This document shows positions 4,514-58,994 of a stretch of 64,000 bases of DNA, one piece after another. The position numbers and the translations under genes are program-made. The notes below the pieces were generated by a model. The model was not told the origin of the DNA. It saw only the letters and a list, made by a program, of their open reading frames with translations, and searched no databases. Every line of letters begins with the position of its first letter. Within the stretch, counting starts at the first letter, position 1. This DNA is from Macrostomum lignano (lineage: Eukaryota): contig NIVC01002522.1 in assembly GCA_002269645.1 (NCBI GenBank), forward strand, positions 101,109-165,108, in the 5' to 3' direction.

Positions 4514-5422
4514 ATGATGCTGTTATTGGTGAGCATCTGATACAACACATGATCCTGCTATTGGTGAGCACCTGACACAGCACATGATCCTGCTATTGGT
4601 GAGCACCTGACACAGCACATGATCCTGCTATTGGTGAGCACCTGACACAGCACATGATCCTGCTATTGGTGAGCACCTGAACACAACACATGATCCTGCT
4701 ATTGGTGAGCATCTGACACAACACATGATCCTGCTATTGGTGAGCATCTGACACAGCACATGATCCTGCTATTGGTGAGCACCTGACACAGCACATGATC
4801 CTGCTATTGGTGAGCACCTGACACAGCACATGATCCTGCTATTGGTGAGCACCTGAACACAACACATGATCCTGCTATTGGTGAGCACCTGACACAGCAC
4901 ATGATCCTGCTATTGGTGAGCACCTGACACAGCACATGATCCTGCTATTGGTGAGAACCTGACACAACACATGATCCTGCTATTGGTGAGCACCTGACAC
5001 AGCACATGATCCTGCTATTGGTGAGCACCTGAACACAACACATGATCCTGCTATTGGTGAGCATCTGACACAGCACATGATCCTGCTATTGGTGAGCATC
5101 TGACACAGCACATGATCCTGCTATTGGTGAGCACCTGACACAGCACATGATCCTGCTATTGGTGAGCACCTGACACAGCACATGATCCTGCTATTGGTGA
5201 GCACCTGAACACAACACATGATCCTGCTATTGGTGAGCACCTGACACAGCACATGATCCTGCTATTGGTGAGCACCTGACACAGCACATGATCCTGCTAT
5301 TGGTGAGAACCTGACACAACACATGATCCTGCTATTGGTGAGCACCTGACACAGCACATGATCCTGCTATTGGTGAGAACCTGACACAACACATGATCCT
5401 GCTATTGGTGAGCACCTGACAC
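4514..5422. repeat. 35-bp minisatellite, about 26 copies
   Basis: Unit ATGATCCTGCTATTGGTGAGCACCTGACACAGCAC; period 35 (4549 to 4584). Confidence 0.97.
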
Positions 5423-8105: not shown

Positions 8106-8842
8106 ACTGACTGACTGACTGACTGACTGACTGACTGACTGACTGACTGACTGACTGACTGACTGACTGACTGACTGACTGACTGACTGACTGACTGACT
8201 GACTGACTGACTGACTGACTGACTGACTGACTGACTGACTGACTGACTGACTGACTGACTGACTGACTGACTGACTGACTGACTGACTGACTGACTGACT
8301 GACTGACTGACTGACTGACTGACTGACTGACTGACTGACTGACTGACTGACTGACTGACTGACTGACTGACTGACTGACTGACTGACTGACTGACTGACT
8401 GACTGACTGACTGACTGACTGACTGACTGACTGACTGACTGACTGACTGACTGACTGACTGACTGACTGACTGACTGACTGACTGACTGACTGACTGACT
8501 GACTGACTGACTGACTGACTGACTGACTGACTGACTGACTGACTGACTGACTGACTGACTGACTGACTGACTGACTGACTGACTGACTGACTGACTGACT
8601 GACTGACTGACTGACTGACTGACTGACTGACTGACTGACTGACTGACTGACTGACTGACTGACTGACTGACTGACTGACTGACTGACTGACTGACTGACT
8701 GACTGACTGACTGACTGACTGACTGACTGACTGACTGACTGACTGACTGACTGACTGACTGACTGACTGACTGACTGACTGACTGACTGACTGACTGACT
8801 GACTGACTGACTGACTGACTGACTGACTGACTGACTGACTGA
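8106..8842. repeat. Perfect (GACT)n microsatellite, about 737 bp
   Basis: Uninterrupted tetramer run; explains the SQSV ORFs. Confidence 0.99.
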
Positions 8843-9567: not shown

Positions 9568-11154
9568 ATGCCGGAACTGACGGGCGCGAACTCTGCCGGC
9601 GGACGGGCCGTCCAGCCAGCGAATGTCATCAGCCAAAGCCGCAGGCAGGCCTGGTACAACTTCGTTGAAACCACCACCGCGCACGGATTCAGCAAGTTCA
9701 ATAGCGGCTCCACCCGACGCAAGACCTTCTGGCTGATTGTGCTCATCCTGGCCAACGTCGGTTTCATCGTCCATCTCAGCTTCCTGGTGATGCGCTTTTC
9801 CGATGTGCCCGTCACCTCGTCGAGAAACGAAGCCCCTGAAGATTTCAAGTTTCCCGACGTGACCTTCTGCCCTAGCAGTCCCGTCAGCGATGTCAAGATG
9901 AGAAACATCTACGTGCCTGACCTCGGCAACCGCAGCCTCAGCGAGGTGGCCAGCCTCCTGGAGCCGGTGTGGCAGCAAATCACCTTGAACGCTACCGACT
10001 ACATGGACTACCCGCTGCTGACTCTGCATGCTCGCCTGATCAGGGAGTCGGCGATCTACCTGCCTCCCGAGATGGTCATGATGTGCCAGTTCTTTGGCTA
10101 CCCGTGCGACCTGCGCAACTTCACCGGCTACGTGGATCCGCGCCGTCTCGGCTGCGCCACCTTCAGCGCCCCTGACAGCCTGCAGCGCGAGTCGCCGGGC
10201 AGCCTGGTCCGCGGCCTCGGTGTAGTCGGCATCTCCCGGACAGACGACTCCACTCTGTCGGCGCGCTACCAATCGCGCAAGATGGCCCTGTTCCAGGGCA
10301 TGACGGTCACAGTGCACGAGCGTGGCACCATGCCAAGCTTTGTGGAGAATACATTTAACAGCCACAATTCCGAGTACTTCGTCATGCGCATGTCTACCGG
10401 AGTTTACCAGGCGATGCAGACGCCGAGCAATCCCTGCCAGAAGGAGCGAGGCAGCATCACGGTGGTGACACCGGGGACGCAGGCCACTGCCACTTATCTG
10501 GAAACAGAGAACGACTGCGAGGAAGCCTGCCTGCAGGACAGCATCCAGGCTGACTGCAACTGTACGAGCGAGCTGCTTCTGATCACCGCCGCCCAGGCAG
10601 CCCGCAACCTGCCCGGCTGCCATAGGGAGGCTGAGCGCTTCATCAATGCCACGCCGAGCGAAGCAGAACTGGCCGGCATGCGGCAGAGGTGGCGCTGCCA
10701 CCGGCGCTGGCTGCTGGCCAGCCGCACCAGCCGGCTGCCCTGCCAGTGCACGGCCTACTGCGACCGGGCTCTCATCGAGGGCAGCGTCAGCAGCTACGAC
10801 TTCGCCGACGAAACCACCGGACGGGACTTTGCGCTGCTCACCTTCAACCAGAACCTAGCCCCGGCCTACCAGGCGGCTAGGTCGGCGGCGAACTTCAGCT
10901 CGCTGGTGAACATCAACGACGTGGTGTTTTACTACGACCCGCTGGTAGAGAACCCGCCGCTAGCCCAGACTGTTACGCAGTTCGAGATCCTGCCCGAGGT
11001 GTCCAAGTCAATGAAGGTCACGGAGTCCAAGACCTACAGTGTTGACGCGTTGTGCTCCGACTTTGGCTCCATAATGGGTCTCTGGCTAGGCATGTCAGTG
11101 CTGACTGTGTGCGAGTTCCTGGAGATGGCCCTGCGTCTGGTCGCCGCTATCTAA
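9568..11154 (+). CDS. DEG/ENaC-family sodium channel subunit, intronless, about 528 aa
   Basis: ATG at 9568. Pre-TM1 TTAHG motif, TM1, FPDVTFC motif, Cys-rich thumb (CEEACLQ...CNC...CQCTAYC), TM2 LCSDFGSIMGLWLGMSVLTVCEFLE with GxS filter. TATA-like TATAAG near 9428. Confidence 0.93.
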   Translation: MPELTGANSAGGRAVQPANVISQSRRQAWYNFVETTTAHGFSKFNSGSTRRKTFWLIVLILANVGFIVHLSFLVMRFSDVPVTSSRNEAPEDFKFPDVTFCPSSPVSDVKMRNIYVPDLGNRSLSEVASLLEPVWQQITLNATDYMDYPLLTLHARLIRESAIYLPPEMVMMCQFFGYPCDLRNFTGYVDPRRLGCATFSAPDSLQRESPGSLVRGLGVVGISRTDDSTLSARYQSRKMALFQGMTVTVHERGTMPSFVENTFNSHNSEYFVMRMSTGVYQAMQTPSNPCQKERGSITVVTPGTQATATYLETENDCEEACLQDSIQADCNCTSELLLITAAQAARNLPGCHREAERFINATPSEAELAGMRQRWRCHRRWLLASRTSRLPCQCTAYCDRALIEGSVSSYDFADETTGRDFALLTFNQNLAPAYQAARSAANFSSLVNINDVVFYYDPLVENPPLAQTVTQFEILPEVSKSMKVTESKTYSVDALCSDFGSIMGLWLGMSVLTVCEFLEMALRLVAAI

Positions 11155-25069: not shown

Positions 25070-27262
25070 TGTGGCGGCCAGACCAGCCCGCTGTAGGCGC
25101 GGGCAGTGCACCTGCACTCAATCGGCCTGACTCACCCTGCCCGGGGGGTGGGTGCACCCAGACGGCCGGCGCGCTAAGCCGCAGGGTCTGGCACGGACTA
25201 TGCGCACCTCCCCATGCCTCTCTGTCGCGCAGTATTTATATGCGATTGTGAAAAATAAAAGTTTACTTTCTCTCGCGCCATTTCATTTTGCGAGTCGCTA
25301 AATTGGTGAGCCCGACAACCCCAGCCGTAGCTGAGGAATGACTACGGAGTCAGCCGTTGCACTCAAACTGCCCACGTTTTGGGCATCTCAACCTCGTATT
25401 TGGTTTGTTCAGGCCGAAGCTCAATTCGCTCTGCGGAAGATCTCCGATGACGACACGAAGTACAGCCACGTCATCGCGGCGCTCGATCAGCAGACCGCCG
25501 AGCGGCTCATCGACGCGCTGGAGAATCCGCCGAGGGAAGAAAAGTACAAGAGGCTGAAGGAGCGACTGCTCGGCACCTTCGAGCTGTCCCGACAACAGCG
25601 GGCCAGCCGCCTGCTCAACATGTCCGGCCTCGGCGACAGGCGTCCCACGGAGTTGATGGACGAGATGCTCGCCCTGCTTGGCGACCACCGGCCCTGCCTG
25701 CTCTTCGAAGAGTTGTTCCGCCAGCAGCTGCCCGCTGAGGTCAGAATGGCAATGGCGACCGCCGACTTCAGCGACCCGCGGGAAGCAGCGCAGCTCGCCG
25801 ACAAGCTGTGGGCCAGCCGGCCGCAGCTCGCCGCGGCCTCCGTCCAGCAGCCGGCAGCGGAGCCCACCCAGCCGGTGGTTTCGGCGACCCGTCGGGGCGG
25901 CAGTCGGCCGTCTAAGCAGCAACAACATCACCCTGACGACGGCCTGTGCTACTTCCATCGCCGTTTCGGAGCCAAGGCACGCCGCTGCGAATCTCCATGC
26001 AGCTTCCAGGGAAACGGGCAGGCCGGCCGTCAGTGAACAGCTCGGCGGCCGGCAACAGCAGCAGCCTGCTCCTCATCCCCGATGTGCAGACGGGCCGGCG
26101 CTTCCTGGTCGACACCGGCGCCGAGGTCAGCATTTTCCCCGTCGATGGCTCGGATGCTCGCCTGCACACGCCCGGCCCGCCGCTCTTTGCAGCCAACGGC
26201 AGCCTCATTCGCACCTTCGGCACCCGCCAGCTCACGCTCGACCTCGGAATCCGGCGCTGCTCGTGGCCGTTCATCCTGGCCGAGGTCTCCCGCCCGCTGA
26301 TCGGCGCCGACTTCCTGCGACACCACGGCTTGCTGGTGGATCTGCCGCACCGGCGACTCCTGGACGCCCGCTCATTCGCCAGCGTGCACCTGCTGGACGG
26401 CACGGGGCCCGGACTGCAGCTCGCCGCAGCCGCCGCTGCGGACCCGTACAGCCAGCTGCTGGCCGAGTTCCCCGCCCTCACCGAGCCCAGTTTCCAGCGA
26501 GCGGAGCCGCGCCACGGGGTCGAGCACCACATCCCGACTCAGGGCCCGCCGGTCCACGCCCGCCCTCGCCGCCTGCCGCCGGACAAGCTGGCGGTGGCCA
26601 AGGAGGAGTTCCGGCTCCTGGAGCAGCTCGGCATCGCGCGCCGGTCCAACAGCCCGTGGTCCTCGCCGCTGCACATGGTGCCCAAGGCCTCGGGCGGGTG
26701 GCGGCCCTGCGGCGACTTCAGGCGGCTCAACGACGCCACGGTGCCCGACCGCTACCCAGTGCCGCACATCCAGGACTTCTCGGCCCGCCTGGCCGGCTGC
26801 TCGGTTTTCTCCAAGATCGACCTCGTCCGCGGCTACCACCAGGTGCCCGTGGCCGCAGCCGACGTGCCCAGGACTGCCGTCACCACCCCATTTGGCCTCT
26901 TCGAGTTCCTGCGTATGCCATTCGGCCTCAAGAACGCTGCCCAGGCCTTTCAGCGACTGGTAGACTCCGTCTGCCAGGACCTGGACTTCGTCTTTGCCTA
27001 CATCGACGACTTCCTGGTTGCCAGCCGCAGCCCGCAGCAGCACCTGGAGCACCTGCGGACGCTGTTCCAGCGCCTAGCCGACAACGGCCTCATCATCAAC
27101 CCGGCCAAGTGCGAGTTCGGCCGCAGCGAAATCGACTTCCTCGGCCACCGCATCAGCGCCCAGGGAGCCGTGCCGCTGCCCGCCAAGGTCGACGCCATCA
27201 CCCGGTTCGCGCCACCGGCCACCGTCAAGGGCTTGCAGGAGTTCGCCGGCATGGTCAATTTT
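25070..27262 (+). mobile_element. Gypsy/Ty3 LTR retrotransposon, 3'-truncated (5' LTR, PBS, gag, PR, RT)
   Basis: LTR about 25070-25302 (TG start, AATAAA near 25254); PBS TGGTGAGCCCGAC at 25304-25316, 12 of 13 matching the tRNA-Trp-type TGGTGACCCCGAC; homology stops after GMVNF; no RNase H, integrase or 3' LTR. Confidence 0.93.
25338..26036 (+). CDS. gag: Gypsy gag, 232 aa
   Basis: VALKLPTFW...[10 protein letters not shown]-terminus typical of this Gypsy clade; C-terminal [18 protein letters not shown] knuckle. Confidence 0.88.
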
Positions 27263-27301
27263 ATGGTCAATGGTCAATTAGATGAAATCAATATTTTTTA
27301 G
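26015..27301 (+). CDS. pol: Gypsy pol (aspartic protease + reverse transcriptase), truncated, in the -1 frame relative to gag
   Basis: [10 protein letters not shown] protease motif; RT motifs [35 protein letters not shown]; retroelement homology ends near 27262. Confidence 0.92.
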
Positions 27302-29623: not shown

Positions 29624-32600
29624 TCAAGCCTGCACTAGATTTTCGGGTTGATCCACGTGACTCTCACCGTCTTGAATGAAGAAAGTCACTGCGGACGTTG
29701 AAGAAGTTGACGCCCAGTTAGTGCTGTTGCTACATGCAACTGTTAGGCGGTCGCTGTCTCGGCGGCGACTTCTATGCGTCTTAGCCGTCTTTGGTGTGGG
29801 ACCCCAGAATCGGGTGCCGAGGCTCAACGAACCGCCCGGATTTCCATGCTCCTTGATGCGCCTATGAAGCAACCCTGAGCCTGTTGCAGCTGTGGTGCTG
29901 GCATTTCTTGTCACAGATGGTGAAGAGGCCATGTGGCCTCTCCGCCGGTGAAATGACAGCTCCGATAAGCGAACGCCGTTGCTGTCCCCGTTGGGTCTGT
30001 CTGTTTTCTTTGCTGAAGTTCGCGACCAGCAGCATTGGCAGCATCCAGCACGATAGTCCTCGGCTCTTTCGCCATTATTTTCTTCTTCAGCGCCAGTGGA
30101 CGTGGAGTTCTCTATTGCGACAGTGGAGACGGGTTCAAAACCTGGTGGGCGCCATCGCTGGCGGCGGCGCTGGCGCTGGCTGCTGCGCTTCTTCATCAAC
30201 TGACCGAGGCTGCGCGCGTTGGCGCCATGAAACTCGCCAACGGCTGCTGCTGCCGTACCAGCCGCCGCCATCGCCGCTGCCACCGATTCCTCGCGTGGCG
30301 GCACCAGCGACTGAGTGCGCTTGTCGAACATCAGGCTGGCGCCGATGTCGTGTTCAACCAGATCAGCTCCGAGCTCTTCGTGCTCAATGGACACGCGCAG
30401 GCCCATGATGAGGTCGATAGCCTTTAAAAGTAGGAATGATGTCACAGCCGTCCAGCCAACTATGGCGAGTACGGCGACAGTCTGGATGCCTAGCAATTTA
30501 AAGCCGCCACCCTAAATTTTTAAGAGATGAACATTTTTCAACGCTGTACTTCTCTTAATTGTACAATAGTTTAACTCACATAAAAGAGTCCGTCGTGTCT
30601 AGTGGTGATTCGAAGCACAGACCAATCTGGATCCTGGTGCGCCATCAGGCCAGGTGTGAGCAAGCTCCACACCGCCGCAGAGAAGTGTACCGCAATCACT
30701 CCTGAAAGGTTTGTTTGCTTAGTACGAGTTATTTTGTCCGGCATCAGATGTACGATCGCAATGCATAGCATTCATTAGCAATACCTAACCTACCAACTGG
30801 ATCGTCGATCTGCAGCTTGAGGACCACATTCTCGGTTAGGCATGCCAGAAGGGCGCCCACCACACCAATGAGGAAGCCCTGCCAGGGCTCTGCCAGCGCA
30901 CACATCGCTGCATTTTTGATGAAATTCGGGTAAAACAGATAATGGATAACCTTGCCATTTTTATACACTGGTTGTCAAACTATACAGTAGCAAAAGCATG
31001 TGAATCGCACCTGTGATGGCCACCAGACTAGCCAAGATGCTATTCACGATTAGGCTGATGTGAAACTTCCGTCGGCGAGTCAGGTAACTGAATATCATGC
31101 CAACCATGCCGCCGCCCATTGAAGCAATGATTGTGGAGACTGCAGATCTACATACGGTTGAGATACGGTGATGGTTTAATGTTTCTCACTGAACTTGTTG
31201 ACCTGTGATTACGGGGGTGTTTTTATAGCCCCAGACTTTACAATTCCAAAAGTGGTCATTTGACTTCAGAGCTTGATTTTTGATGGGACAATTGAAAAGT
31301 GTCGTATCACTGTGCCATACAATAGCGTGCAAAATAGGGAATATGAAGTTGCTTTGTCTTGCATGCCTTAAAAATATCTGGATACAGATGTAGGTGTCAT
31401 AGGGAAGTAAATTTTCAGAAGTATGAAATTAAGGGACATGTAGTTTTTAAGTCGGATGTCATTGCAAGATATGAAATTAGAGTAGAAAACGCTCCCGTGC
31501 TAAACGTATTTTCAGATTCCCAAATTTCGACAAATAAAGGCTATACAAGCATACTTGTACGAGTATCAGAAGTCGCTTAGGTTAACCAGTTTCTGTCTTG
31601 TATTTGGTATTCAGAAGGAAATTACAGTAAAAAAATATAAAGCCGCAAACCTTGCCGCAAGTTTCCACTTTTCGCCACTGATGCCGAAGGTTGAGCCGCA
31701 GTTGAAGCCCAACCAGCCCCACCTGCACGGATGAAAAATTGAACCAATGCATATATTAAGTATTCTGTTTCGCGTATTAGAGTTTTGACTCTAAGCTAAA
31801 TCATTTATGCACTATTATAAGTTGACTTTTAAAAGTCATTCGCGGCCTTGAAACTGTGCTGTTGGCATGTGCTTTACCCGGGTTCATAGAAACTTTAAAT
31901 CGATTCATTTATGGTGCATTATTGTCACAGGTTTAATATCCACTCCTACTGACAAGGGCACGCTTCGACCAAAGACTAAGGCTGCCCATATATTTCTAAG
32001 TACAAGCAATTGTATATCCGATCACTATAGAACAGCATGTTAAAAACGAGCAACTCAGCCAGCTCCCTCATTACAGGTACATGGCAGAAAGGCAAAAGCA
32101 AGCAGCAAGTGAACACAAACGCCAGCTAGAGGCTGAACTAGCCAAAATGCAAATGAAAAGGGCCGACAGGCGCTGCCAGAGCCTAGACTCACCAGAGCAT
32201 GAACATTCCCAACAGAGCGTTGGTCGGGCTGCCCATCTGTGGAAAACTATCGGAGAATCTGTGCCGCCTCGGCTTCAGCATTAGAGTCGCTACCATGCCG
32301 GTTGTGCCGCCCACCAAGTGCACCGGTCCGGCGCCGGCTATGTCCATGCAGCTCATCTCGTACAGGAAGCCTTCCTCGGCCCACATCCAGTGCGCCGGGA
32401 AGCAAAAGATGAAGGTGTTAAAAAAGCTGAATAGCATGTAGGACTCGAGTTTTGTCCGCTCAGCCATCGCTCCGGACACAATCGTTGTCGAGGTTGTCGC
32501 AAACGACGCCTGAAAGAAGAATTTGGAGTACAGCCAGCCCGTGTCGTTCCTGTGCGCCATCACCATGAAGTTGCCCCAGCCGCAGAACTGGTTGGCCATG

Positions 32601-33011
32601 TCGTCGTTGCCGAAAGAGAATGAATAGCCGGCTAGCCAATAGGAGAAGCCACCGAACACCACGTCCGCAACGTTCTTCACCATAATGTTGACCTCGTTTT
32701 TGGCCGTGCACGAGCCGGACTCAAGCAGACCAAATCCTAGTGGAGTTCATAGGGTACAGGTTGTAGTTCGATGCACGTTGAACATGCATGGTCAAGTCGT
32801 GCATGATGGTAATTTGTACAAATTGGTTGGCCGCATTACTGTACTCGTAACTCTGCGTTCTACGCTTCCCAACAGCCAACACTAAACGTTTGAGAGATCA
32901 ATACGTCTCACCGCTTTGCATCGTGAAAATGCTGAATGTTGACGATAATATCCATATAGCGTCACTTTGCAGCTCCCGAACAAGTGGCGTCTGAGTTGCT
33001 GTCGAGGACAT
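29624..33011 (-). CDS. amt: Amt/Mep-family ammonium transporter (isoform using exon 1B), 7 exons, about 658 aa
   Basis: Exons 33011-32912, 32736-32193, 31722-31651, 31147-31011, 30907-30794, 30701-30580, 30511-29624, all phases compatible. Motifs FTMQSGFGLLESG, FATTSTTIVSGAMAER, DIAGAGPVHLVGG, WWGWLGFNCGS, IDDPVGVIAVH, EELGADLVEH; long low-complexity C-tail. Confidence 0.95.
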
Positions 33012-34619
33012 GTTTTCACGGAGCCTTTGCTTCGTCTTTCTTGGCTGCTCTAGAAAATTTCTCGCTAGACTGGGCACCAAACCCCTACACCTGTATATTT
33101 CCGTTTCCTTCTTTCTTGTTTTGTTTCCAGGCTGATTGGCTCGGAGTGATCAACAAACGTCTCATCTTACACTATCACCTGTTGCCAGGTGCAGTCTTGG
33201 GTATAGTCTTTTGACTTTTGCATCATCCCCTTTCATCCCACTTTGGTGCAGTCGAAATCTTTCTCTTCATACTTCACAATGACAAAATTATTCATTTCCC
33301 CAGAGGTATCTCGCTCTTAGCTCTCTCTTATCCCTTTGCTGATGCAGTTGTTATTTGTGGTGCTTTTGAAGACTTTCATTTTGAGCAAAGGTTTAAAACC
33401 AAAAGTAAACCACAGATTACTACTAAGTCAAAATGAAAAAGGAAAGATTTGGGACATTAGATCGTAGCTATTGGATATTTGATGAGAATTTCACAGCTTA
33501 ATGAATCCTAGTTATCAGGTCTGCAGAAGTTATTTCTTTAAATATCGATCGTTATGGGTATAGGGTATTTGTTTTGAAACGTGATTGAAACTACAGATTC
33601 ATCTATATTACTCGTAGTTAGATGTCACTCCAGCATTCCAGGTTAGGGCCACAGACACGGCCGTTGCTGGTAGTGCTTGAGAGGAGCAGAAGCTATAGGA
33701 CCATGGTCTGAACCCCTGGGTTTTCGCGCTGCAACCAGGAATATAAAATCTGTGATTGAATCGCTCTACATTTGTCCGCCGTCACTATAGACACTCGTGC
33801 GCTTGATGCGGAATTCTTGGAAAGACCATGGCCACCCGCATCGAGCTCTAGGCATAGATATTTGACTGTTAAAGCAAGAAGACATCGAAAAAGGCAGAAT
33901 TAGAGGTAGCTATACTGTAGATGACTGTGCAGCAAGTCCTAATGGGGGTTGGGTTGGGAATTATTAATGACGCAAGTTAGAGCAGTATACTGAAGCGTCT
34001 TATCAGTATTGGATACTGATGTGTCCTATGCACTGATTATAACATTTTTGTATGCGTGTAGTATGAAATAATGGCAAGAGGAAATTTGACAGACAGAGTG
34101 TAAAATCTCCATCGTGAATAATCACACTCGGGAAGTTTGTCTTATGAAAATAGCTAGCTGCGTGATTGTGATATGATGTCATGATATCCGGGGCTTTTTG
34201 TGTTTTTATATAGCAGAACATATTCATATCTTTATACTCTCGCAAATTAAGTAATTTAGTATGCGTTAAGATTATCGTAGATAACAAAACGAAACAAAAA
34301 ATACACCTCTAAAAAGTCTTAACCCCTCTCTATCAATAGGGTTTTTTGGTAAGTGGACGAAAGTAAGAATACCACAAAATGAAAAGATCCTATATATTAT
34401 CCATATTTCAGAAGTTGGTATTTAGTATATTCTGACTAGCAATCTGCGCCCCCCCAATGAGGGGGCAACAAAGAAAGGAATAATAAATTTTAATTAAAAA
34501 TTCTGAATTTCCATTAGGCTTTTAAATATCAAAAATTTCCCTTGGTAATATGGTTCATTTTCAACTTCCAGCTTTATTTTTGCTTGTGTTAGTGCCTATA
34601 AAAATAATTAGACACGAAC

Positions 34620-34701
34620 CGCTCTGCATTGTGAAGATGATGAAGGCCGAGGTCAGCACCCAGATTGCGTCAGCTTCGCCGCTAATTCCAGCCTTGTACA
34701 T
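34620..34701 (-). CDS. amt: Alternative first coding exon (1A) of the ammonium transporter
   Basis: Encodes MYKAGISGEADAIWVLTSAFIIFTMQS-G, paralogous to exon 1B (...SDAIWILSSTFSIFTMQS-G); same phase-1 donor position (G|GTTCGT). Confidence 0.8.
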
Positions 34702-34921
34702 TGGCGAATAATAGTGCAGATTGTGGGGTCGCTGTCATCGTTTCCGGCTTCTGTTAAGACACCGGCGGCTGCGCCTTGGAGTGACATATCGAGCTGGGAA
34801 GAGTGGTTGTTGTTGTTGTTGTTGTCGTTGTTGTACACTGCTGTCACGACGATGCTAGACCAGTTCTGACCGGCTGGGCTCTTGTCTGAATGCGCGCAAA
34901 ATGAAGATATGCGGTCGGCTC

Positions 34922-34927
34922 TTTATA
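34922..34927 (-). promoter_or_regulatory. TATA box for Amt exon 1A
   Basis: GTCTATAAAGAGCCG on the minus strand, about 35 nt upstream of a CATTCAG initiator-like sequence. Confidence 0.55.
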
Positions 34928-35505
34928 GACCCGTCTGTCTTCCCCTCAAGCCTCCCGCATCATCATTTCTTCCCAATTTGACTGCCCGGTAAAGCGGATT
35001 CGTGCAAAAAATTGAGCTGGAGAGGCAGACAGTAGTAGAGGGAACTGCAGAAGCCGCCAAATCAGCTTTGAATGCTTATTTTAAGATGGCCGCGGTGCAA
35101 GACGCTGCAAGACAGCCAGTGGATTAGCGAGTTCGCATTTGGAAAGTATGAGTAGTCCAATTTGAACTGTCCGAGTCTGAGTTGAACCGTGCATACTACC
35201 TATGAAATAGTTTTTACTGTTTTTTTAGTATTTTTTAGTCTTTTGAGTTTTATTGTATACACTGCATCTGCAGCTTCTTTTCAAATTAGCTAACTAGCAC
35301 ACTTAGACCCTTTGACCTATTTTCTGTTAGAGTTAAATGCTTCAGGCTGGGGCAGGTACACTTCCACATTTCTGAAAAATGCACACTTAGGACCTTGCAA
35401 ATTTGAACCCCTTGACCTGATTTCTTTGAATCTGTAATATGGGCTTACTCTCATCTATTTCCTTTTTATAATTAACTTTCAAAACTACACACTAGAAAGT
35501 AATCA

Positions 35506-36028
<523 letters not shown>

Positions 36029-37425
36029 AGCACTGCAGATGACGCAAGGTAGGTTTTCCAACTCTTGCTCAGGCACACTGGGTCTGAAATTGCGGTTTTC
36101 GCTCAATGTTGCTGCTTTAAATATAAAAGGAGTTCGCGCGTATCCTTCACAAACCGCTGACACCGCTATCGATTGAATTGTGCGTTCAACTTTTGAGACA
36201 AGTTGCATGCATATTTGCAATGTCCGTTAAGAACTGTAGTTATTGCATTTGTTCTGAATTTTTGTCTCTAAAACTAACGCTCAAAAAAAAATTTCCGTGC
36301 CTTGTTTAGACATTATTTGCATGTCTACCGAAGAGGACTTCCGGCCAAGAATATTTGGATCACTGCTCAGATTTGATTGTTTCTTTAGACTTGACATTCG
36401 TCTCAGATTTTGTTTTAAATTCATTTGACATGTAGACAGTTTTAGCTTGTCTTCTTCCATGCGTTTGTTTCCTGATTGAACCGCGCAATCAACTTTCACT
36501 GCTCCAAAATTAGGAAAATGCCCTAAAAATCTCTGAATTATAGCATCAGCAGCGAACAATGTCCCGAAAACAGTGACAACACAAGAAAAAAGCTAGCAGG
36601 CGGTTGAAAAATGTCTAAGTGGATGATGTAGCTGGGACGGCGCAACAAGACGAACAAGGCCGGCGCAGCGATACAGAGACGCGTTGGTGACTCGCCGAAA
36701 GTCAAAGCGGTGAGGTTAGGCTCGATACCATTGATAGCCTAGCGTCACCTCTCCGCGAAATTGAGAGAGTTTGAAGCGCAAACAATTGCATTCTCAAATG
36801 GTAGCAAATTTTTCAATGTTGCTGAATATGTTTGAGCTCAGAAGTCTTTTTTAACAGCCTCTGCTAAATAGCTAGAAAGCAAGTGAATTTGGAAGGCGGG
36901 ATTCGATATTGTTTTTAGCAAAAGTAGAAGTCCCGAGCACTTTCGCCAGAGCACTAACGAGCTGTAATCAGCCCACCTGGCACATATCTGTCAAACAATA
37001 TTATATTTGAAATTGGTGGTGGGTTTAATTATTTTAATACAAAGAGGGACATATTTTAAGACACTCGTAAGTAAACAGTTACGTTTTACATAAGTAAAAG
37101 TACGTTAAGTCAAATTAAAAAAATTTAGTAGCATTTGATCTTTAAAGAAACTTTGGAGAACGGATTCAAAATCAATCTGACCGCATCGTCCGTAAAAGAT
37201 GTCTATTGGTTGTAGGTAAATGTTTTACCTTGCTAGTATTTTTGCAAGTCATAAAAATGGTTGTTATAATCGTGGAATATGAGTTGATAGAAATTGAGTT
37301 ATGACAAAGTATACAACATCTCCTCAACAGTTTACTTGCAAAAGTAGTTTAGTTGGATTTTTTCATATAGTTTTTATATTAAAAACAGACAGCTCAGCAT
37401 GTAACAGGGGAAGGGGGAGGGGGAT

Positions 37426-40400
37426 TTATTCAAAAATTTCCACTGATCGGCCGGTGGTCTGGTCGCCGGCAGTTCCGCCGCCTCTAGGGTAGTTTGTCAT
37501 CCAGGATGTCAGTCGCTCCTTCACGTTCATGTGGCCTCCGAGAATGTCGGCGGGAGTGGACTGCAGCTTCACGGACGTGTTGCAGAACACCTGTGCAGAA
37601 GGATGGTTTTGGAGTTGAAACAGTTATTAGCATGAAGATGCAGCATGAAGCACCGCGAGCAAGCAGCGGTCACTATGAAGTTCGGCGAAGTCATTGGCTC
37701 TGAACTCAATGAGAATAACAATAAGATACACCCAGGTACAACGCTTTAGGCTTTATCGACCCATAAACCAGCGCTGACTGCTGAGCACATACAAGCGCTC
37801 CAATACTGTACGCAGGCACGAACTCACGCAGGGTGTACAGCAGCCCTGACTTTCCAATCGTCAGGCATGTACACTCTCTGTGCCTCGGGGGTTGGGCCTC
37901 ATGACTGTGAATCGCACTTACGATCGCACCACAATTACGTGCACACAAGCCCCAAATTAATCTTGAGAGGGGGGTGAAAATAATCCAAATCTATCCAGAG
38001 GGAATCGTAAATCAAATAAGTAATTAAAAATTCAGATGTTTTAACACTAGGAATGCTAAGTTTGGGCTTAAAAACTTATCACTTTCCATCTCGCTATTAA
38101 ATTCTGTAGCAAAAATCGCACGATTGTCACGACCTTCTACTTTGTTGTCGATGGTTATTCTATTAAGTTCACGGTTTAAGTTTTAACGGCTACACTGCTA
38201 TGCCTTCCAACTTACCGTAGCCTGCAGATTGACCAGTTCGGTGCTGTGGAAGGCTGCCCCGTCCTGCTGTAGCGGCACAATGCGAGACGCTTCAATCGAT
38301 GCTAGCTGGCGTGTTTTTGCCTCGCGCAGCTTTGAGTAGTCCGAGGTTCGCGCTACAAAATCGCTGAAGTCATTAATCGCCTTCTCCTTCTGGCGGTGGT
38401 CCTCGCGAAGCTCCGAGTACAGCGCCTGCTCTTCCGAGACTTCCTGATCCCGCTTGGCGTCCATGAGCTCCGACTGGGTCTTGGCAACCAGAAGTGTCTC
38501 CTGCTCCGTGCACTTGTTGATCCAGTCCAGTGCCTCCCGGTCTGGCGTGACAGGCCGCACCTGCTCCAGCTCCAGCTCCCGCTGCACCTCGTCCCACACC
38601 TCGCCAAGCTTGTAGTCCAGGTAGCGCTCGATCAGCGTCAGAGTCACGTGATCTTCAGCATTGATGCCCGGCAGGTCGACAAAGCCGATCCGGTAGAACA
38701 GAGCATAGATCTTGGCGCGCACGTTCTCGGCGACTTCAACGATCGATCGGCTCGGCCAGTTGGCCGGCTGCGGCGTCACCGCCTGCTTGCGCTGGGCGTC
38801 GCCCATCAGTGGAGACAGCAGGTCACCGATGGAGCCGTCTGGCCGGCGCGGACAACCAATGCTGGCTTCGGTGTCGCGCCACAACGCGCAGAACAGATGC
38901 GGAGCCGTCACCTCGCGGCCGCCTTTCCAGGTCTTCAAGTGCGGCAGAGTTTTCTCGTTCTCGCTGAGATCGAGAAGCACGCCAAGAATGAGGCTGTGCA
39001 AATCCGACGGGCAACGTTCCAGCAAGTCCAGTAGCAGATACACACCCTCTCGTTCAAGGAAGCAGTCCTCCGTGGTGTAAGAGCCGACCACGCAGCACCA
39101 TACAGCGTCGATGGCACCAATAACGAGCTGGTAGTGACCAAGACCAGAGCTCAGAAGCCCCGGGTCCGTGCGCAGGAACTGCACTAGCGTAGCTACACCA
39201 GACGGGCCGAACAGGTCTTTATTGTGCAGACTGTTCTCGCAGAGACCGCTGAGGATGCCCAGCATCTCGCGCTTCATCTCCAAGTCGATGGTGTCGTCGT
39301 CATTCACTGCGGCTGTTGCAGCTTGTCCGGTTCGGTTCCCGGCCGACACAGAAGAGGCCAGAATCTCGCTTAGGGCACCGATAGCATCTTGGTCAACAAA
39401 GTCGGCCAGGATGTCCGGGTTGTTGGTGGTCACCATCGCCGAGATCGCTCGCAAGGTGCGCCGCATCTGGGCCCGCTTGCTGCCGCGGCCACCTGCGCCG
39501 TGGAAGGCGTTGCCATAGCCGAGATAGTCGTCGCTGGCCTCCGTGCACCAGAAGAGCAATTCCAGGAGCCGGTTGCAGCCGTTGCAGCTGACGAAGTCAG
39601 CTTGCATCTTCGGTCCCACGGTAGCAAGGGCGGACAAAGCCAGCAGCTGCAACTCCTCAACGTAGGCCGGCGGCAGCTCTCTCGGTTTGCTTTTTGGCTC
39701 ATTCGGCTTCACATAGGAGAGCAGAGCCAGCATGAAGTGGCCTTCAGACAGAACAGGCAGGGCACAGGGATCGCTGGATAGGCTGACGAGCGTGCTTATG
39801 AGCAGCTTCTTGAGTTCAAAATCCTCGTGGTTCTTCGACAGTTTCAGATTCCTGACCAGTGGACTGTGACTCTTGACCTCCTCGAAGGTTGCGAACAGAG
39901 TCAACTGCTTGAGAAAGCCGACCTCGATGAACGGCGCCCGACAGTCGGTAGCGGCCAGGAGTTGCACCAACACCAGAACGTCGTTCCTTAACTGACGGTC
40001 GAACACGGAAAATGTCCTTGGCAGCAGATAGACAAAAGCCTCGCGCAGTTGAGCGACGCACTCCTGACAGGCAAGCTGCTTGGCAACTTGCTCAGAATCG
40101 CCATGCTGCATCAGGTTCCAGAGGATCTCAACCGAGCGGAACAGCAGTTCACCGGACGGATCCGGGTCTGTCATACGGCTGCACAGAGTGTAGGCGGCGT
40201 TGACGCTGAGCATCTGGATGCAGCAGCGGCTAGAGTTACCCGACAGCTTCTGTAGCAAACTGATGACCGCCAGGCGAACTGTCAGGTCTTTGTCCAAAAG
40301 CTTAAGGGTTCGAACCAGCGTCTCAGAAATGTCGCTCTCCTCACAGATGGCCTGGTTGTATCTGGGCAGTGAGAAAGAATAGGAACGGATATATAAACTA

Positions 40401-41049
40401 TTACTTACGCTCGTACAATCATACTAGTAGCCATACCGCTCAATAAAGCTACTCACTTTCTCCCAGCTGGTTTGTGATCCCTGACGTATTGTGGCGGCGG
40501 CTCGCCGTCGTAGATCTGCGCCAGCGTCCGACAGATCTGCAGTCGGACTCGGCTGACGTCGACGCGCATGAGAAAAGCGAGCTGAGATGCCGTCTCTACG
40601 CTGATCTGACGGTAAGCGAGCTCGTCTGATGCCTTCTCCATGAGGAAGGGCAGCGCGCAGACGCACAGACAGTCAACCAGGGGCTCCACGTAGCAGACCA
40701 GACCCTCCTCGATGCGATCTGCGCAGATGTTAAGAATTCGTCGCACCTGCACAAGGTCCTTCATAAGGAAGCCCTGCTTGTAGTGGCGCAGAAGACGTTC
40801 AATTGCCATCACGTGCCGGTCATACAGACCTGCGTAGTGAGGATCCGTGAGCACCTTGAGCACGCGTTCCAGGTCAACTGTTTGCAGCTTCTCACCGACA
40901 ACATTGCCAATGTCCTCGTCACTGATGATGTGCGTAACTATGGGGATTTTCTGATTCTCCAGCTTCTGTGAGATTTCAGTCAGAGAAAGGCCACCAGAAG
41001 GCAGAGACGATGACCCTCCACCAGCGAAGGCTTGGGTCTTTGTTGCCAT
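37426..41049 (-). CDS. CFAP69: Cilia- and flagella-associated protein 69, 3 exons, about 967 aa
   Basis: Exons 41049-40457 (phase 2), 40361-38216 (phase 0), 37590-37426. Motifs DPDPSGELLFRS, DRQLRNDVLV, EDFELKKLL, GNAFHGAGGRG, ENVRAKIY, RYLDYKLGEVW, LRPVT-type VRPVTPD and last-exon STPADILGG match recalled CFAP69. Confidence 0.95.
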
Positions 41050-43440
41050 ATCAGGAACAGTCAAAGCATTAAAAAATATTAGTTTGTCTGTATTTTTAGG
41101 AACTGCATTTTAGTGAGCAAAAATAACATGTTTAGATATTTATTGGTAATATACATGTTGCATAAGACCTAAAGCTCTTAAAAAGTTAATTATATATACA
41201 TACTTTTTAATACATAGTTATTTTTATTACATGGTCACTGTATGCCAGGGAACTATTGTATAAAATGAAGCTTCTCTGTTTAACAAAGTCTTTTTAATTA
41301 TGCATATTTATTTTGATAAATGGATGCTTTGTATAGATGGACTTCTAACTATAAATAAAGTATTTTAATCTGAATGAGAATCTTTATCTGAATAAAAATA
41401 AGCTCAAAATTTTATAAACACTAATTGTTTATTTATGTTAAGAACAAATATAAAAATGTTCATTAAGTAAACATTGTTGTGGAATGAATCATAAATAAAA
41501 TAAATATATTTCTTTATCTCGTAACGAGCTATAAATAAAAATAATACTGCAGTGCATATTTCTGCTTTGAACATCTCCGGCTTCTTATTTATTGCTAAAT
41601 ATTTCAATGCGTTGCTTGACTCGTTCTAGTATGAATCATTGTGTTAGCAACACAATAAATTTATATTCATTTGGTGCTATTTCAGTTTTTTATCTTTATG
41701 AACACTAAACAAACAGCATTTCAACACTGTGTTTAGATAAATATAAAGTAGTTTCTTTCAATCCATAGAATACGGAAAAAATATCCAAGTAACAATTACT
41801 ACTACTGCACAAGCTGTTTAAACTAACTGTTCGATATATTTAATCCAACAGAATAAAATCGGGTTTTAAGCTATAATTAGAAATAACTAGACATAAAACA
41901 ACGTATTGGAGTGAGACTAAAAGATTACAATATCAACAAACAAGCTTAGAAAGAGCATCTTGAAGCTAAAGTAGTTTTACTGTTTTATAAAAAGACAGTA
42001 TTTTACAAGTTAAATTTTTGTTTAGCGACAGATAGTATTAAAAACCGATTTAACAGAAAAGTGTAAAAATGCAAATTTTTCATTTTTCGTAGCTAAAAAA
42101 GTTGATATGTTTTGTATTTTTTTCCACTTTCAATCGTTCCTACTTTTGCCTAATAGTTTTGTTATAATGTTACTAACTTTTTAAAATTGATCATGCTTAG
42201 GGCCAAGTGCGAACTCTCAGCTACAGTAGAAAGGGAGTGAATCCTACATATACTAAAAATGATTTGTCTCTCATTCAGGTAGGTATGTGTATGATCTGCA
42301 GCCTCACTGATTCTGTCCTGGAATGAAAAAGGCACATATGAAAGCCAAATTTACTGGGGGTATTGTACTTTATTCGATGCGTTTGTTCTTTTGCAATTTG
42401 TCTTAATGACGACGAAAACCTTCGTAGAGTACATTTATTCGTTTTATAGATTTAAATAAAATCTAAATGCATCAAATAAGTAGCTTTATTGTACTATTGA
42501 GTTAACTTCATAAAACCTGAATGATTCGTAGCGTTTGTCTCACAACCATTAAACGATACATCATGATGCACGTTAAATCAAGCGCTTCGGTTTAATTTCG
42601 AAAGCTCCTCAGCTTAAAAAGTATGGTTTAAGCCTAAGACAATGAGTGGTTTATTGTAGATCTGTTACAATGAACTGCGGCACTAGGATGAGATTTCGCC
42701 TAATGCAGTAGTTTCTAATCGAATTGATATATCCAACGAGAGCCTTACCAATTTATTTATGCCGAATGAACTTTGAATTAAAAATTCTGAAATTAGTCAG
42801 ATTATATTCAATTTTCGAGCTGCTACACATTTGTTAAGCATTTCTGGGCGGTTTGCCTGTTGTAGATGGGGCCTGCTATTGCATCACTACCGCACGTTAA
42901 ACTACAATATGTAATCATCACTGAGTTTTCTGACCTCCCATTCCTGTCGCATATTGAGCCCCAATATGCAGCATGATCTTAATAGGGACTTATAGATATA
43001 ACATGTAGTGTCAATAGTAGCTGCCGTAGAGTATAGTATAGCATGAGAAATATGTCACAGCTTGCAGAACAGCGTGAATACTGGCGGGCGTCAAACTTCA
43101 GGGTTTGGTTACCGGGGGGGGGGGGCAGATCTGAAGCTGCATGTATTTGTAGAGAAACCAGTAGCGATTTGTTTTAACTAGTGAACTAGTGTCAAAATTT
43201 CTAATGTCTCGAAATATCACCCTCATCGAGACCTGACATGTACAGGTTTTACCATAGACAAATTCGGTGGAAAAATCCTTTTTCTTGAGAGTATATTAAA
43301 TGCACTAGCAATATGACAAATTTTTTCGATTTAGGTTTGTCAAGGAGCCGCAAGGAGGCCCTCCTTACCGGCCTCCAGCTCAATTCTAAGAAAATCAAGT
43401 GCAGCGTCCTACTTCTTACAGGCGGAAAGGTTCGTTCTCG

Positions 43441-43497
43441 ACACTAAGTCACTAAGAAAGACACTAATGAGACAGACAGACAGACAGACAAACAGTC

Positions 43498-43554
<57 letters not shown>

Positions 43555-45721
43555 CTAAGACAGTAAGACAGACAGACACTAAGACAGTAAGACAGGCAGA
43601 CACTAAGACAGTAAGACAGACAGACACTAAGACAGTAAGACAGACAGACACTAAGACAGTAAGACAGACAGACACTAAGACAGTAAGACAGGCAGACACT
43701 AAGACAGTAAGACAGACAGACACTAAGACAGTAAGACAGGCAGACACTAAGACAGTAAGACAGACAGACACTAAGACAGTAAGACAGACAGACACTAAGA
43801 CAGTAAGACAGACAGACACTAAGACAGTAAGACAGACAGACACTAAGACAGTAAGACAGACAGACACTAAGACAGTAAGACAGACAGACACTAAGACAGT
43901 AAGACAGACAGACACTAAGACAGTAAGACAGACAGACACTAAGACAGTAAGACAGGCAGACACCAAGACAGTAAGACAGACAGACACTAAGACAGTAAGA
44001 CAGGCAGACACCAAGACAGTAAGACAGACAGACACTAAGACAGTAAGACAGACAGACACCAAGACAGTAAGACAGGCAGACACTAAGACAGTAAGACAGA
44101 CAGACACTAAGACAGTAAGACAGACAGACACTAAGACAGTAAGACAGGCAGACACCAAGACAGTAAGACAGACAGACACTAAGACAGTAAGACAGACAGA
44201 CACTAAGACAGTAAGACAGACAGACACTAAGACAGTAAGACAGACAGACACTAAGACAGTAAGACAGGCAGACACTAAGACAGTAAGACAGACAGACACC
44301 AAGACAGTAAGACAGACAGACACTAAGACAGTAAGACAGACAGACACCAAGACAGTAAGACAGGCAGACACTAAGACAGTAAGACAGACAGACACTAAGA
44401 CAGTAAGACAGACAGACACTAAGACAGTAAGACAGGCAGACACCAAGACAGTAAGACAGACAGACACTAAGACAGTAAGACAGACAGACACTAAGACAGT
44501 AAGACAGACAGACACTAAGACAGTAAGACAGACAGACACTAAGACAGTAAGACAGGCAGACACTAAGACAGTAAGACAGACAGACACTAAGACAGTAAGA
44601 CAGACAGACACTAAGACAGTAAGACAGACAGACACTAAGACAGTAAGACAGACAGACACTAAGACAGTAAGACAGGCAGACACTAAGACAGTAAGACAGA
44701 CAGACACTAAGACAGTAAGACAGACAGACACTAAGACAGTAAGACAGACAGACACTAAGACAGTAAGACAGACAGACACTAAGACAGTAAGACAGACAGA
44801 CACTAAGACAGTAAGACAGGCAGACACTAAGACAGTAAGACAGACAGACACTAAGACAGTAAGACAGACAGACACTAAGACAGTAAGACAGGCAGACACC
44901 AAGACAGTAAGACAGACAGACACTAAGACAGTAAGACAGACAGACACTAAGACAGTAAGACAGGCAGACACTAAGACAGTAAGACAGACAGACACTAAGA
45001 CAGTAAGACAGACAGACACTAAGACAGTAAGACAGACAGACACTAAGACAGTAAGACAGGCAGACACTAAGACAGTAAGACAGACAGACACTAAGACAGT
45101 AAGACAGGCAGACACTAAGACAGTAAGACAGACAGACACTAAGACAGTAAGACAGACAGACACTAAGACAGTAAGACAGACAGACACTAAGACAGTAAGA
45201 CAGACAGACACTAAGACAGTAAGACAGACAGACACTAAGACAGTAAGACAGACAGACACCAAGACAGTAAGACAGGCAGACACTAAGACAGTAAGACAGA
45301 CAGACACTAAGACAGTAAGACAGACAGACACTAAGACAGTAAGACAGGCAGACACCAAGACAGTAAGACAGACAGACACTAAGACAGTAAGACAGACAGA
45401 CACTAAGACAGTAAGACAGACAGACACTAAGACAGTAAGACAGACAGACACTAAGACAGTAAGACAGACAGACACTAAGACAGTAAGACAGACAGACACT
45501 AAGACAGTAAGACAGACAGACACTAAGACAGTAAGACAGGCAGACACTAAGACAGTAAGACAGGCAGACACTAAGACAGTAAGACAGACAGACACTAAGA
45601 CAGTAAGACAGACAGACACAAAGACAGTAAGACAGGCAGACACTAAGACAGTAAGACAGACAGACACTAAGACAGTAAGACAGACAGACACTAAGACAGT
45701 AAGACAGGCAGACACTAAGAC
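43441..45721. repeat. 24-bp higher-order repeat derived from GACA, about 90 copies, preceded by pure (GACA)n
   Basis: Unit GACA-GTAA-GACA-GACA-GACA-CTAA with recurrent GGCA and CCAA variants. Confidence 0.98.
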
Positions 45722-46427
45722 GGACACGCAGACACTGGGCCTTGAATAATTGAAAAAAACTCTTCAAATTACACTGCAAGTAGTCCTTGGACATCCGCAT
45801 GCATTAAGATTTAATTGTCTGGCAATCAGTTGGGACGAAAAATATTAGAATTTTCTAGGAGAAGCGGAGGAAAGCAACCGATTAACCAATCCAAATGTGA
45901 CGAAGCAGCCTCGGGGAAGAATAAGTTTTTCGAGCAGGACAAAAATAGCCGCTTGAGCTTGGGTGCCGCAACGATTTGCTGAGGTGGAGCGGTTTATCTC
46001 CAGAGAAAAATGCTTTTCTGCTAGACACGGTGGGACAGAAGCCAGCTCAAAGGCGCGCAGTAAACTGGTGCCTACTTGGCAAGCAATTTCCCCAATTTGT
46101 CGGAATTCTTTCAATACGTCGCTCAGAAAATTGTTTTTCTGACGACCAAACTCGCTGCAGCTGTTGAAAGGCAGAAAAACAAAAAAGCTTTTTCAGTTTT
46201 ATGTTAAAGAAAAATGAATAGCCGATTCCAGACTTGAACAGCTGCTGCAGTCTCTAAGTGCCCAAAATTCTGCCGAACCGAAAGAAAAATAGATGAAAAA
46301 CACTTACGAGTATTGCATGCAAGACTGGGCGAGTTCTAACGTTGCTTTACTTCTCGGGCATACTAGACCGACCACATTGATGTCAATCAATCAAGTGGTT
46401 CGTTTAGGGTAGCAGTGACTCATCTTG

Positions 46428-47150
46428 ATTGGCGCCCCAATCTCCTTGGTTGGCGCCCCAATCTCCTTGGTTGGCGCCCCAATCTCCTTGGTTGGCGCCC
46501 CAATCTCCTTGGTTGGCGCCCCAATCTCCTTGGTTGGCGCCCCAATCTCCTTGGTTGGCGCCCCAATCTCCTTGGTTGGCGCCCCAATCTCCTTGGTTGG
46601 CGCCCCAATCTCCTTGGTTGGCGCCCCAATCTCCTTGGTTGGCGCCACAATCTCCTTGGTTGGCGCCCCAATCTCCTTGGTTGGCGCCCCAATCTCCTTG
46701 GTTGGCGCCACAATCTCCTTGGTTGGCGCCCCAATCTCCTTGGTTGGCGCCACAATCTCCTTGGTTGGCGCCACAATCTCCTTGGTTGGCGCCCCAATCT
46801 CCTTGGTTGGCGCCCCAATCTCCTTGGTTGGCGCCACAATCTCCTTGGTTGGCGCCCCAATCTCCTTGGTTGGCGCCCCAATCTCCTTGGTTGGCGCCCC
46901 AATCTCCTTGGTTGGCGCCCCAATCTCCTTGGTTGGCGCCACAATCTCCTTGGTTGGCGCCCCAATCTCCTTGGTTGGCGCCCCAATCTCCTTGGTTGGC
47001 GCCACAATCTCCTTGGTTTGCGCCCCAATCTCCTTGGTTGGCGCCCCAATCTCCTTGGTTGGCGCCCCAATCTCCTTGGTTGGCGCCCCAATCTCCTTGG
47101 TTGGCGCCCCAATCTCCTTGGTTGGCGCCCCAATCTCCTTGGTGGGCACC
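46428..47150. repeat. 21-bp minisatellite, about 34 copies
   Basis: Unit TTGGTTGGCGCCCCAATCTCC; stop-free in all six frames. Confidence 0.98.
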
Positions 47151-47266
47151 CCTGTCTCTTGTTGGGCACAAAGCTGGGCACATCTCACTAGAAACCTTGT
47201 ATAACCTCAGCCAAACTTGACCACCAGAAAGCACCGATGTGATTAAATTCTTCAAAAACTCTTAAG

Positions 47267-58563: not shown

Positions 58564-58994
58564 AACTACATGATTTAAGAGAGGCTGGACAGCATTTCAA
58601 AACATTTGCTTGAGCACATAAAAATCCGAATCAGCTCGTTGAATGTCAGGTTTACAACCCGAGTTGAGTGTCCGGAAGCGGCGGCTTGCTTTTGCAACTG
58701 CACTGAGACTCTGAGAAACACTGTATACCCAATTTTTAATGACTTCTCCTTTAAGGGATAAAAATTGCGTGCCAAATGGGCGCAAAATCTCTCCCCTTAC
58801 TCGTTCTATTGGATGACTCAAGCGCCCTGGCAACACTCTCGGGGATCAGGGAGGCAAAAAGAGGCCCGGAGGCGACAGGAAACTGGCTTTAAACCAAGAA
58901 AATGCTCAAAATGTTGTCCCAACCTCAGTTGGTGAGCTCATATTCTCCATTGAGGTTCCCAGTTCCCCAGATTTCAACAGAAGTTTTTCACCCG

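Follow-up and report, generated by a model that had tools for sequence, protein, structure and literature searches.

In UGT1A and the clustered protocadherins, a variable first exon is combined with constant exons, and the variable exons lie next to each other as homologous copies of the same phase in front of a common downstream exon. Tandem exon duplications are treated in passages of PMC9013439, PMC9741552 and PMC8373072, and the passages in PMC9013439 and PMC9741552 describe duplicated exons as commonly spliced in a mutually exclusive manner. In such systems the copies are conserved at the protein level, and the isoforms are identical save for one homologous segment. Here we describe an ammonium transporter (Amt) gene of the flatworm Macrostomum lignano that shares these features. 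It lies on the minus strand of a 64,000-nucleotide stretch of contig NIVC01002522.1 (assembly GCA_002269645.1, positions 101,109 to 165,108), which we call the window and within which all coordinates are given. Two adjacent homologous exons of the same phase, 1A and 1B, stand upstream of a common exon 2. The locus is unlike UGT1A and the protocadherins in having two copies only and in the modest extent of the variable part, a short tail and two-thirds of a helix; alternative use is here a prediction. The sequence points to one M. lignano Amt gene in which exon 1 was duplicated in tandem long ago, the two copies now serving as alternative 5' coding exons, a reading to which we assign a probability of roughly 0.55.

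The gene spans 29624-34701 and, following the reading frame by translation, comprises seven exons, counting one of the two 5' coding exons. Exons 3 to 6 were placed by frame following together with tblastn.

34620-34701, minus strand: exon 1A, coding part, MYKAGISGEADAIWVLTSAFIIFTMQS-G, with ATG at 34701 and phase-1 donor GTTCGT
33012-34619, minus strand: interval between 1A and the 1B ATG, 1.6 kb, 38% G+C; it would be intronic in 1A transcripts, and any 1B promoter would lie in it
32912-33011, minus strand: exon 1B, coding part, MSSTATQTPLVRELQSDAIWILSSTFSIFTMQS-G, with ATG at 33011 and phase-1 donor GTGAGA
32193-32736, minus strand: exon 2, shared, GFGLLESGSC...MFMLW, with acceptor ...CCACTAG at 32737
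31651-31722, minus strand: exon 3
31011-31147, minus strand: exon 4
30794-30907, minus strand: exon 5
30580-30701, minus strand: exon 6
29624-30511, minus strand: exon 7, encoding the final transmembrane helix and a tail of some 240 residues, and ending in the TGA stop at 29626-29624

The limits of 1A and 1B agree exactly with those of the initial annotation on re-reading and three-frame translation. Exon 1A ends in ...DAIWVLTSAFIIFTMQS-G with the donor G/GTTCGT after 34620, and exon 1B in ...DAIWILSSTFSIFTMQS-G with G/GTGAGA after 32912, the slash marking the end of the exon. Both thus close with ...AGC G/GT, and in each case the leftover G and the GA of exon 2 at 32736 restore GGA (Gly) in MQS-G-FGLLESG, as expected from the common phase-1 junction noticed earlier. 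The predicted products are 652 residues long for the 1A form and 658 for the 1B form.

The homology of the two exons, which the initial annotation attributed to exon duplication, is confirmed by comparison of their 18-residue cores, where 14 of 18 residues and 38 of 55 nucleotides are identical. The ungapped BLOSUM62 score of the cores is 76, as against 29 for the runner-up among the window's six reading frames and a maximum of 39 in 100 shuffled windows. When the whole protein was compared with the window by tblastn, each exon was found once, along with the second exon for the first transmembrane helix (TM1), and no other Amt-like piece was detected in the 64 kb; the E values for the two TM1 exons were 1.9e-4 and 1.0e-4. 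The possibility that 1A belongs to a separate truncated paralogue was rejected, as the window holds no other Amt fragment. At the DNA level only about 66 bases can be aligned between 1A and 1B, at 69% identity, and self-comparison of 32700-35400 with the window revealed no duplicated DNA outside the coding core, the flanks being unalignable. Because only the coding core still aligns, the duplication is old. Judged by this alignment, 1A and 1B are an old tandem exon duplication, neither a recent copy nor alleles.

Both copies appear to have been held to the protein sequence. In the alignment of 18 codons, the two exons differ at 10.5 of 11 synonymous sites, as against only 6.5 of 43 non-synonymous ones (binomial p = 9e-5). 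This deficit of non-synonymous change indicates protein-level constraint on both exons, which is hard to explain unless both were translated, and we take it from this comparison that each copy has been translated through most of its past. Across about 170 animal homologues the consensus reads DATWILTSAFIIFTMQSG; exon 1A is identical to it at 16 and exon 1B at 14 of 18 positions, that is, they depart from it at two and four positions, respectively, with one change common to both. Exon 1A also uses codons like the rest of the gene, its G+C content at third codon positions (GC3) being 0.74 compared with 0.71 for the gene core and its log-likelihood ratio +15.2 bits. Of the two, 1A has the appearance of the ancestral or major form, and 1B that of a minor or restricted one. 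Two homologous exons that are both constrained and both compatible with exon 2 are most economically read as alternative 5' exons.

The predicted product is an Amt/Mep/Rh ammonium transporter by its PF00909 match, its eleven modelled helices and its pore residues. Both isoforms match the PF00909 profile over positions 2-395 of 399 with 358.4 and 359.8 bits, far above the curated cut-off of 23.2 bits, and the core is matched end to end by the solved structures 6EU6, 2B2F, 5AEX and 1U7G of AmtB, Amt-1 and Mep2 (E = 6e-45 to 5e-20). An AlphaFold2 model built on 23 sequences (mean predicted local distance difference test score, pLDDT, 89.4; predicted template modelling score, pTM, 0.90) has eleven long helices between residues 8 and 393. 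In the alignment of 23 sequences, D159, the Asp of the DxAG motif, and H167 are invariant, and the second pore His sits in IDDPVGVIAVH, in agreement with the consensus IDDPVGxxxVH. Around this second His (30650-30701, minus strand) the protein reads AVHFSAAVW as against VHxxxGxWG in most homologues, and Branchiostoma likewise has VHFSCAVW. Unlike this gene, the AmtB, Amt-1 and Mep2 proteins have VHG..G at the second His and lack the roughly 240-residue tail, and the genes that encode them in prokaryotes and fungi have no comparable exon structure. The C-terminal tail (29624-30340, minus strand) is rich in Arg, Ser, Ala and Thr, contains a CCQCC motif and has no counterpart in solved Amt structures.

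The closer relatives are animal genes of the 'putative ammonium transporter 3' type from Branchiostoma, Capitella, Lottia, Lymnaea and Tachypleus, with 52-62% protein identity to the M. lignano product. Our comparison set consisted of seven Amt loci holding ten Amt genes. A phase-1 intron after ...FTMQS, in the middle of TM1, is found in Branchiostoma, Capitella, Lottia, Lymnaea and two tandem Tachypleus genes, and it is absent from Nematostella and from both Amt genes of a eukaryote deposited in ENA. The conserved position of this intron implies that exon 1 is an ancient discrete unit; in the Branchiostoma gene the following two exon boundaries, too, fall where they do in M. lignano. The sampled Amt genes of the five related animals have one TM1 exon each, whereas the M. 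lignano gene has two. A single TM1 exon was found in each of eight Amt genes, the check covering intron 1, where present, and up to 10 kb upstream; these genes represent six other animals, five of them identified species and the sixth the ENA eukaryote. The second Lottia gene also has a single TM1 exon, its upstream region not having been separately examined, and the third Tachypleus gene is cut by the end of its locus, within which no TM1 exon is present. From these sequences the exon duplication seems to be an addition, specific to this lineage, to an exon that is itself ancient. Amt genes also occur in local clusters, head-to-head in Lottia (5285-5341 and 10001-10057 of its own locus) and in tandem in Tachypleus and the ENA eukaryote. 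These clusters indicate that duplication of whole genes is common in the family, and that of a single exon is seen only in the M. lignano window. A literature search returned nothing on Macrostomum Amt, nor on alternative first or mutually exclusive exons in animal Amt genes. Together with the single TM1 exon of the eight other genes, this is consistent with the initial remark that the architecture is undescribed for animal Amt genes. It is a common product of tandem exon duplication and, in the Amt family, apparently not yet reported.

How the two exons might be brought into use depends on the sequence upstream of each, where the following elements were located.

34921-34927, minus strand: TATAAAG, a candidate TATA box about 220 nt 5' of the 1A ATG, a consensus match only
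34653-34787, minus strand: upstream open reading frame (ORF) 1, 44 codons with G at -3, not in the frame of 1A and ending within its coding part
34682-34738, minus strand: upstream ORF 2, 18 codons, A at -3, out of frame and ending past the 1A ATG
33135-33139, minus strand: CCAAT, a candidate promoter element in the context GAGCCAATCAG (about 33140-33130), 125 nt 5' of the 1B ATG, a consensus match only
33091-33092, minus strand: AG, the acceptor earlier proposed for 1B, with 4 of the 20 upstream bases pyrimidines

We propose that transcripts starting 5' of 1A would splice the donor at 34620 to 32736, and that 1B, for which no usable acceptor is predicted, would be lost with the intron. Transcripts starting within the interval between 1A and 1B would begin at 1B and use its strong GTGAG donor at 32912 to reach the same acceptor. 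The outcome would be the two transporters of 652 and 658 residues. Two promoters and mutual exclusivity are inferred from this arrangement, as would be any difference in expression or function. In keeping with such a role, the ATG of 1B is clean, with A at -3 and the nearest upstream ATG at 33165 (none for 150 nt), and its GTGAG donor matches the consensus and is the stronger of the pair. The interval 33012-34619 contains no repeat common to other parts of the window and no meaningful long ORF.

Exclusivity was initially explained by an acceptor at 33091 and by an immediate TAG upon splicing of 1A into 1B. Neither argument survives in that form. The AG at 33091 is a very weak acceptor with its 4 pyrimidines in 20, the best candidates before 1B reaching 10-12 of 20, and joining 1A to it gives ...MQSGVGVWCPV and a stop only after 8 codons. 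The claim that the two exons cannot be chained accordingly stands for the AG at 33091 and fails for those at 33140, 33065 and 33050, which would join 1A to 1B in frame. A more plausible explanation is that 1B, having no convincing acceptor, looks like a first exon, which accounts for exclusivity without any stop codon. On this sequence evidence, 1B would be removed with the intron in transcripts from 5' of 1A.

Trans-splicing has to be considered as a source of the 5' end of 1B, because about 30% of M. lignano genes are trans-spliced with a 35-nt leader at the acceptor motif [T/C]TNCAG (PMC8629364). In genes receiving this spliced leader (SL), the leader acceptor lies 5' of the first exon, and 1B could in principle be such an exon. 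It differs from them in that the AG at 33091 fits the motif in part only and lacks a pyrimidine tract; ATACAG at 33091, AATCAG at 33132 and GAGCAG at 33045 each fail at the first or second position of the motif. SL trans-splicing of 1B out of a 1A transcript was rejected, since, where a donor precedes an acceptor in cis, the two are joined by cis-splicing (Conrad et al. 1993, as quoted in PMC8629364). An acceptor 3' of the 1A donor would be subject to the same rule, so a second promoter is needed in any case.

Several observations weigh against two alternative 5' exons. The TATAAAG motif described earlier as the TATA box of 1A is indeed present, but both it and the CCAAT element are bare consensus matches. 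The 1A ATG has C at -3 and lies behind two out-of-frame ATGs (34787 and 34738) in better context, so that translation of 1A from a TATA-driven mRNA would be poor. The donor of 1A, GTTCGT, is weak, about as far from the consensus as the donors of exon 3 (GTTTGC) and exon 4 (GTGCGA). The selection test covers 18 codons only, and 1B carries no codon-usage signal, its -0.8 bits being equal to the value of one of its wrong frames. Finally, in a collection of 5.8 billion sequences, searched with a shortened protein and with an N-terminal profile of two sequences, no protein links either 1A or 1B to exon 2, and the public M. lignano models begin inside exon 2. In a separate comparison of 241 fetched homologues, no pair is identical past the junction yet different before it.

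The missing codon-usage signal of 1B could mean that only 1A is in use and that 1B is a duplicate in intron 1, barely or no longer spliced and slowly decaying. The GC3 of 1B, 0.52, is likewise at the low extreme for the gene (5th percentile among its own 33-codon blocks), and 1B is further than 1A from the animal consensus. We regard this as unlikely nonetheless, because synonymous sites are saturated and an untranslated 1B would be expected to have departed from the consensus at many more than 4 of 18 residues, and because the ATG of 1B stands in good context, its frame is open and its donor is the better of the two. Conversely, the two upstream ATGs, the poor context of the 1A ATG, the weak 1A donor and the distance of 1.9 kb between 1A and exon 2 might suggest that only 1B is used, 1A being either a remnant of an incomplete gene duplication or a piece of a non-coding transcript lying upstream. 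Exon 1A is, however, the better conserved copy and has the codon usage of the gene itself, there is no other Amt fragment near it, and a relic of such age would not remain intact, all of which makes this explanation improbable. It would seem somewhat less improbable, though still quite unlikely, that 1A and 1B follow a common non-coding 5' exon as internal, mutually exclusive exons, the acceptor before 1A being, for example, the CAG at 34733. The passages of PMC9013439 and PMC9741552 cited above make such splicing frequent among tandem-duplicated exons, the 1A frame is open from 34734, and an upstream start would remove the difficulty of the upstream ATGs. Yet the candidate acceptors before both exons lie in purine-rich sequence, a repeat search of 33012-34619 revealed no strong inverted repeats of the docking/selector type and no convincing complementary intronic elements, and the TATA box is rightly placed for 1A as a first exon.

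The in-frame joins raise the further prospect of one mRNA containing both exons through the AG at 33050, 33065 or 33140, with an extra N-terminal half-helix in the protein. All three joins are open, and TTTTCTAG at 33050 is a better acceptor than the AG at 33091. Still, the linker between 1A and 1B would be Lys/Arg-rich and without coding signal (-6.0 bits in codon usage), the hydrophobic stretch of 1A amounts to only about 14 residues without exon 2, and one more crossing of the membrane would reverse the orientation of the remaining protein, following an argument in PMC5740500, according to which joint use or joint skipping of two exons each encoding part of a membrane helix is not expected. 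We therefore consider chaining very improbable; because its product would be an extra half-helix before an eleven-helix transporter, alternative use is the natural reading. Least credible of all is an artefact in which the exon 1 of another Amt copy was placed upstream during assembly of a repeat-rich, hidden-polyploid genome. A passage of PMC10468722 describes M. lignano assemblies as difficult, and the window is full of tandem repeats, but the sequence has no Ns, the flanks of the exons contain no repeat or duplicated DNA, and the exons are 31% diverged, so they are not alleles. The preferred reading remains one gene with two alternative 5' coding exons.

Upstream ORF 1 deserves comment in its own right. 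It begins at the first ATG 3' of TATAAAG and is the best of the three frames 5' of 34701, with a weak coding signal of +1.6 bits. A 1-base indel within 34734-34702 would join it in frame with 1A and lengthen the N-terminal tail to about 40 residues, the length being set by the position of the indel; a tail of about 40 residues is typical of animal Amts. The out-of-frame state of this ORF may reflect an assembly error, a real frameshift or a regulatory upstream ORF.

As to the protein, each exon had initially been taken to encode TM1. In the AlphaFold2 model, helix 1 extends from residue 8 to 36 and the exon junction falls at 27/28, within the helix, suggesting that exon 1 supplies the extracellular N-terminal tail and only the outer part, about two-thirds, of TM1, and that exon 2 completes the helix. 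The tails of the two isoforms are unrelated in sequence, with 10 residues before the conserved Asp in the 1A form and 16 in the 1B form, and the isoforms differ at four residues in the outer two-thirds of TM1 (V/I, T/S, A/T and I/S). TM1 is located at the subunit interface of the trimer in published AmtB structures. If the same holds here, trimer partner choice, stability or targeting to the membrane could vary between the isoforms from one tissue to another. That the first exons yield functionally distinct transporters, differing beyond the choice of promoter, seems doubtful to us.

The first exons have escaped the public gene models. The best protein match is M. lignano UniProt entry A0A1I8HU72, which is 100% identical and begins at the internal MVKNV of exon 2. 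Both this entry and A0A1I8H913 are models of the Amt gene that run only from a Met within exon 2 to the end of exon 5, and the second of them also misreads an intron, taking 20 intronic codons as protein. Without a first exon, both models lack most of TM1. Two further M. lignano Amt paralogues are cut at the same internal Met, and their first exons were probably missed too.

The surroundings of the gene are rich in repeats. A 525-bp run of (AGAC)n at 35506-36030 lies just upstream of the Amt gene, and tandem repeats are dense throughout the window, among them a 2.3-kb satellite of 24/48 nt, a perfect (ACTG)184 and many minisatellites of 20-40 nt; the repeat blocks include 43440-45721, 8106-8842, 4514-5422 and 46424-47152. 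These repeats produce long spurious ORFs on both strands. The upstream neighbour, at 38198-41064 on the minus strand, is a homologue of CFAP69 (cilia- and flagella-associated protein 69; E = 6e-252). It ends 3.3 kb 5' of the Amt TATA box, a distance above the 1-kb operon threshold used for M. lignano. On the plus strand, an uninterrupted ORF of 557 codons at 9481-11154 matches the DEG/ENaC amiloride-sensitive sodium channel family (PF00858, E = 5e-46). Two ORFs in overlapping frames at 58902-61048, also on the plus strand, match the ligand-binding regions of ionotropic glutamate receptors (ANF_receptor and Lig_chan-Glu_bd) and are probably exons of one gene of this type. A GC-rich block (59% G+C) at 25338-27301 is open over long stretches of both strands, with frames of up to 535 codons and no Pfam match.

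The wider significance of the architecture is limited, since the principle is well known and the predicted difference between the proteins is small. The public gene models are corrected by the addition of a first exon. If the two alternative 5' exons are confirmed, the Amt family would join the genes diversified by tandem exon duplication; should the isoforms also prove functionally distinct, this would be the first case of exon-level paralogy diversifying an Amt/Mep/Rh protein. For M. lignano itself, confirmation would mean that the animal has two separately regulated forms of one transporter, which would be useful for studies of nitrogen excretion in flatworms.

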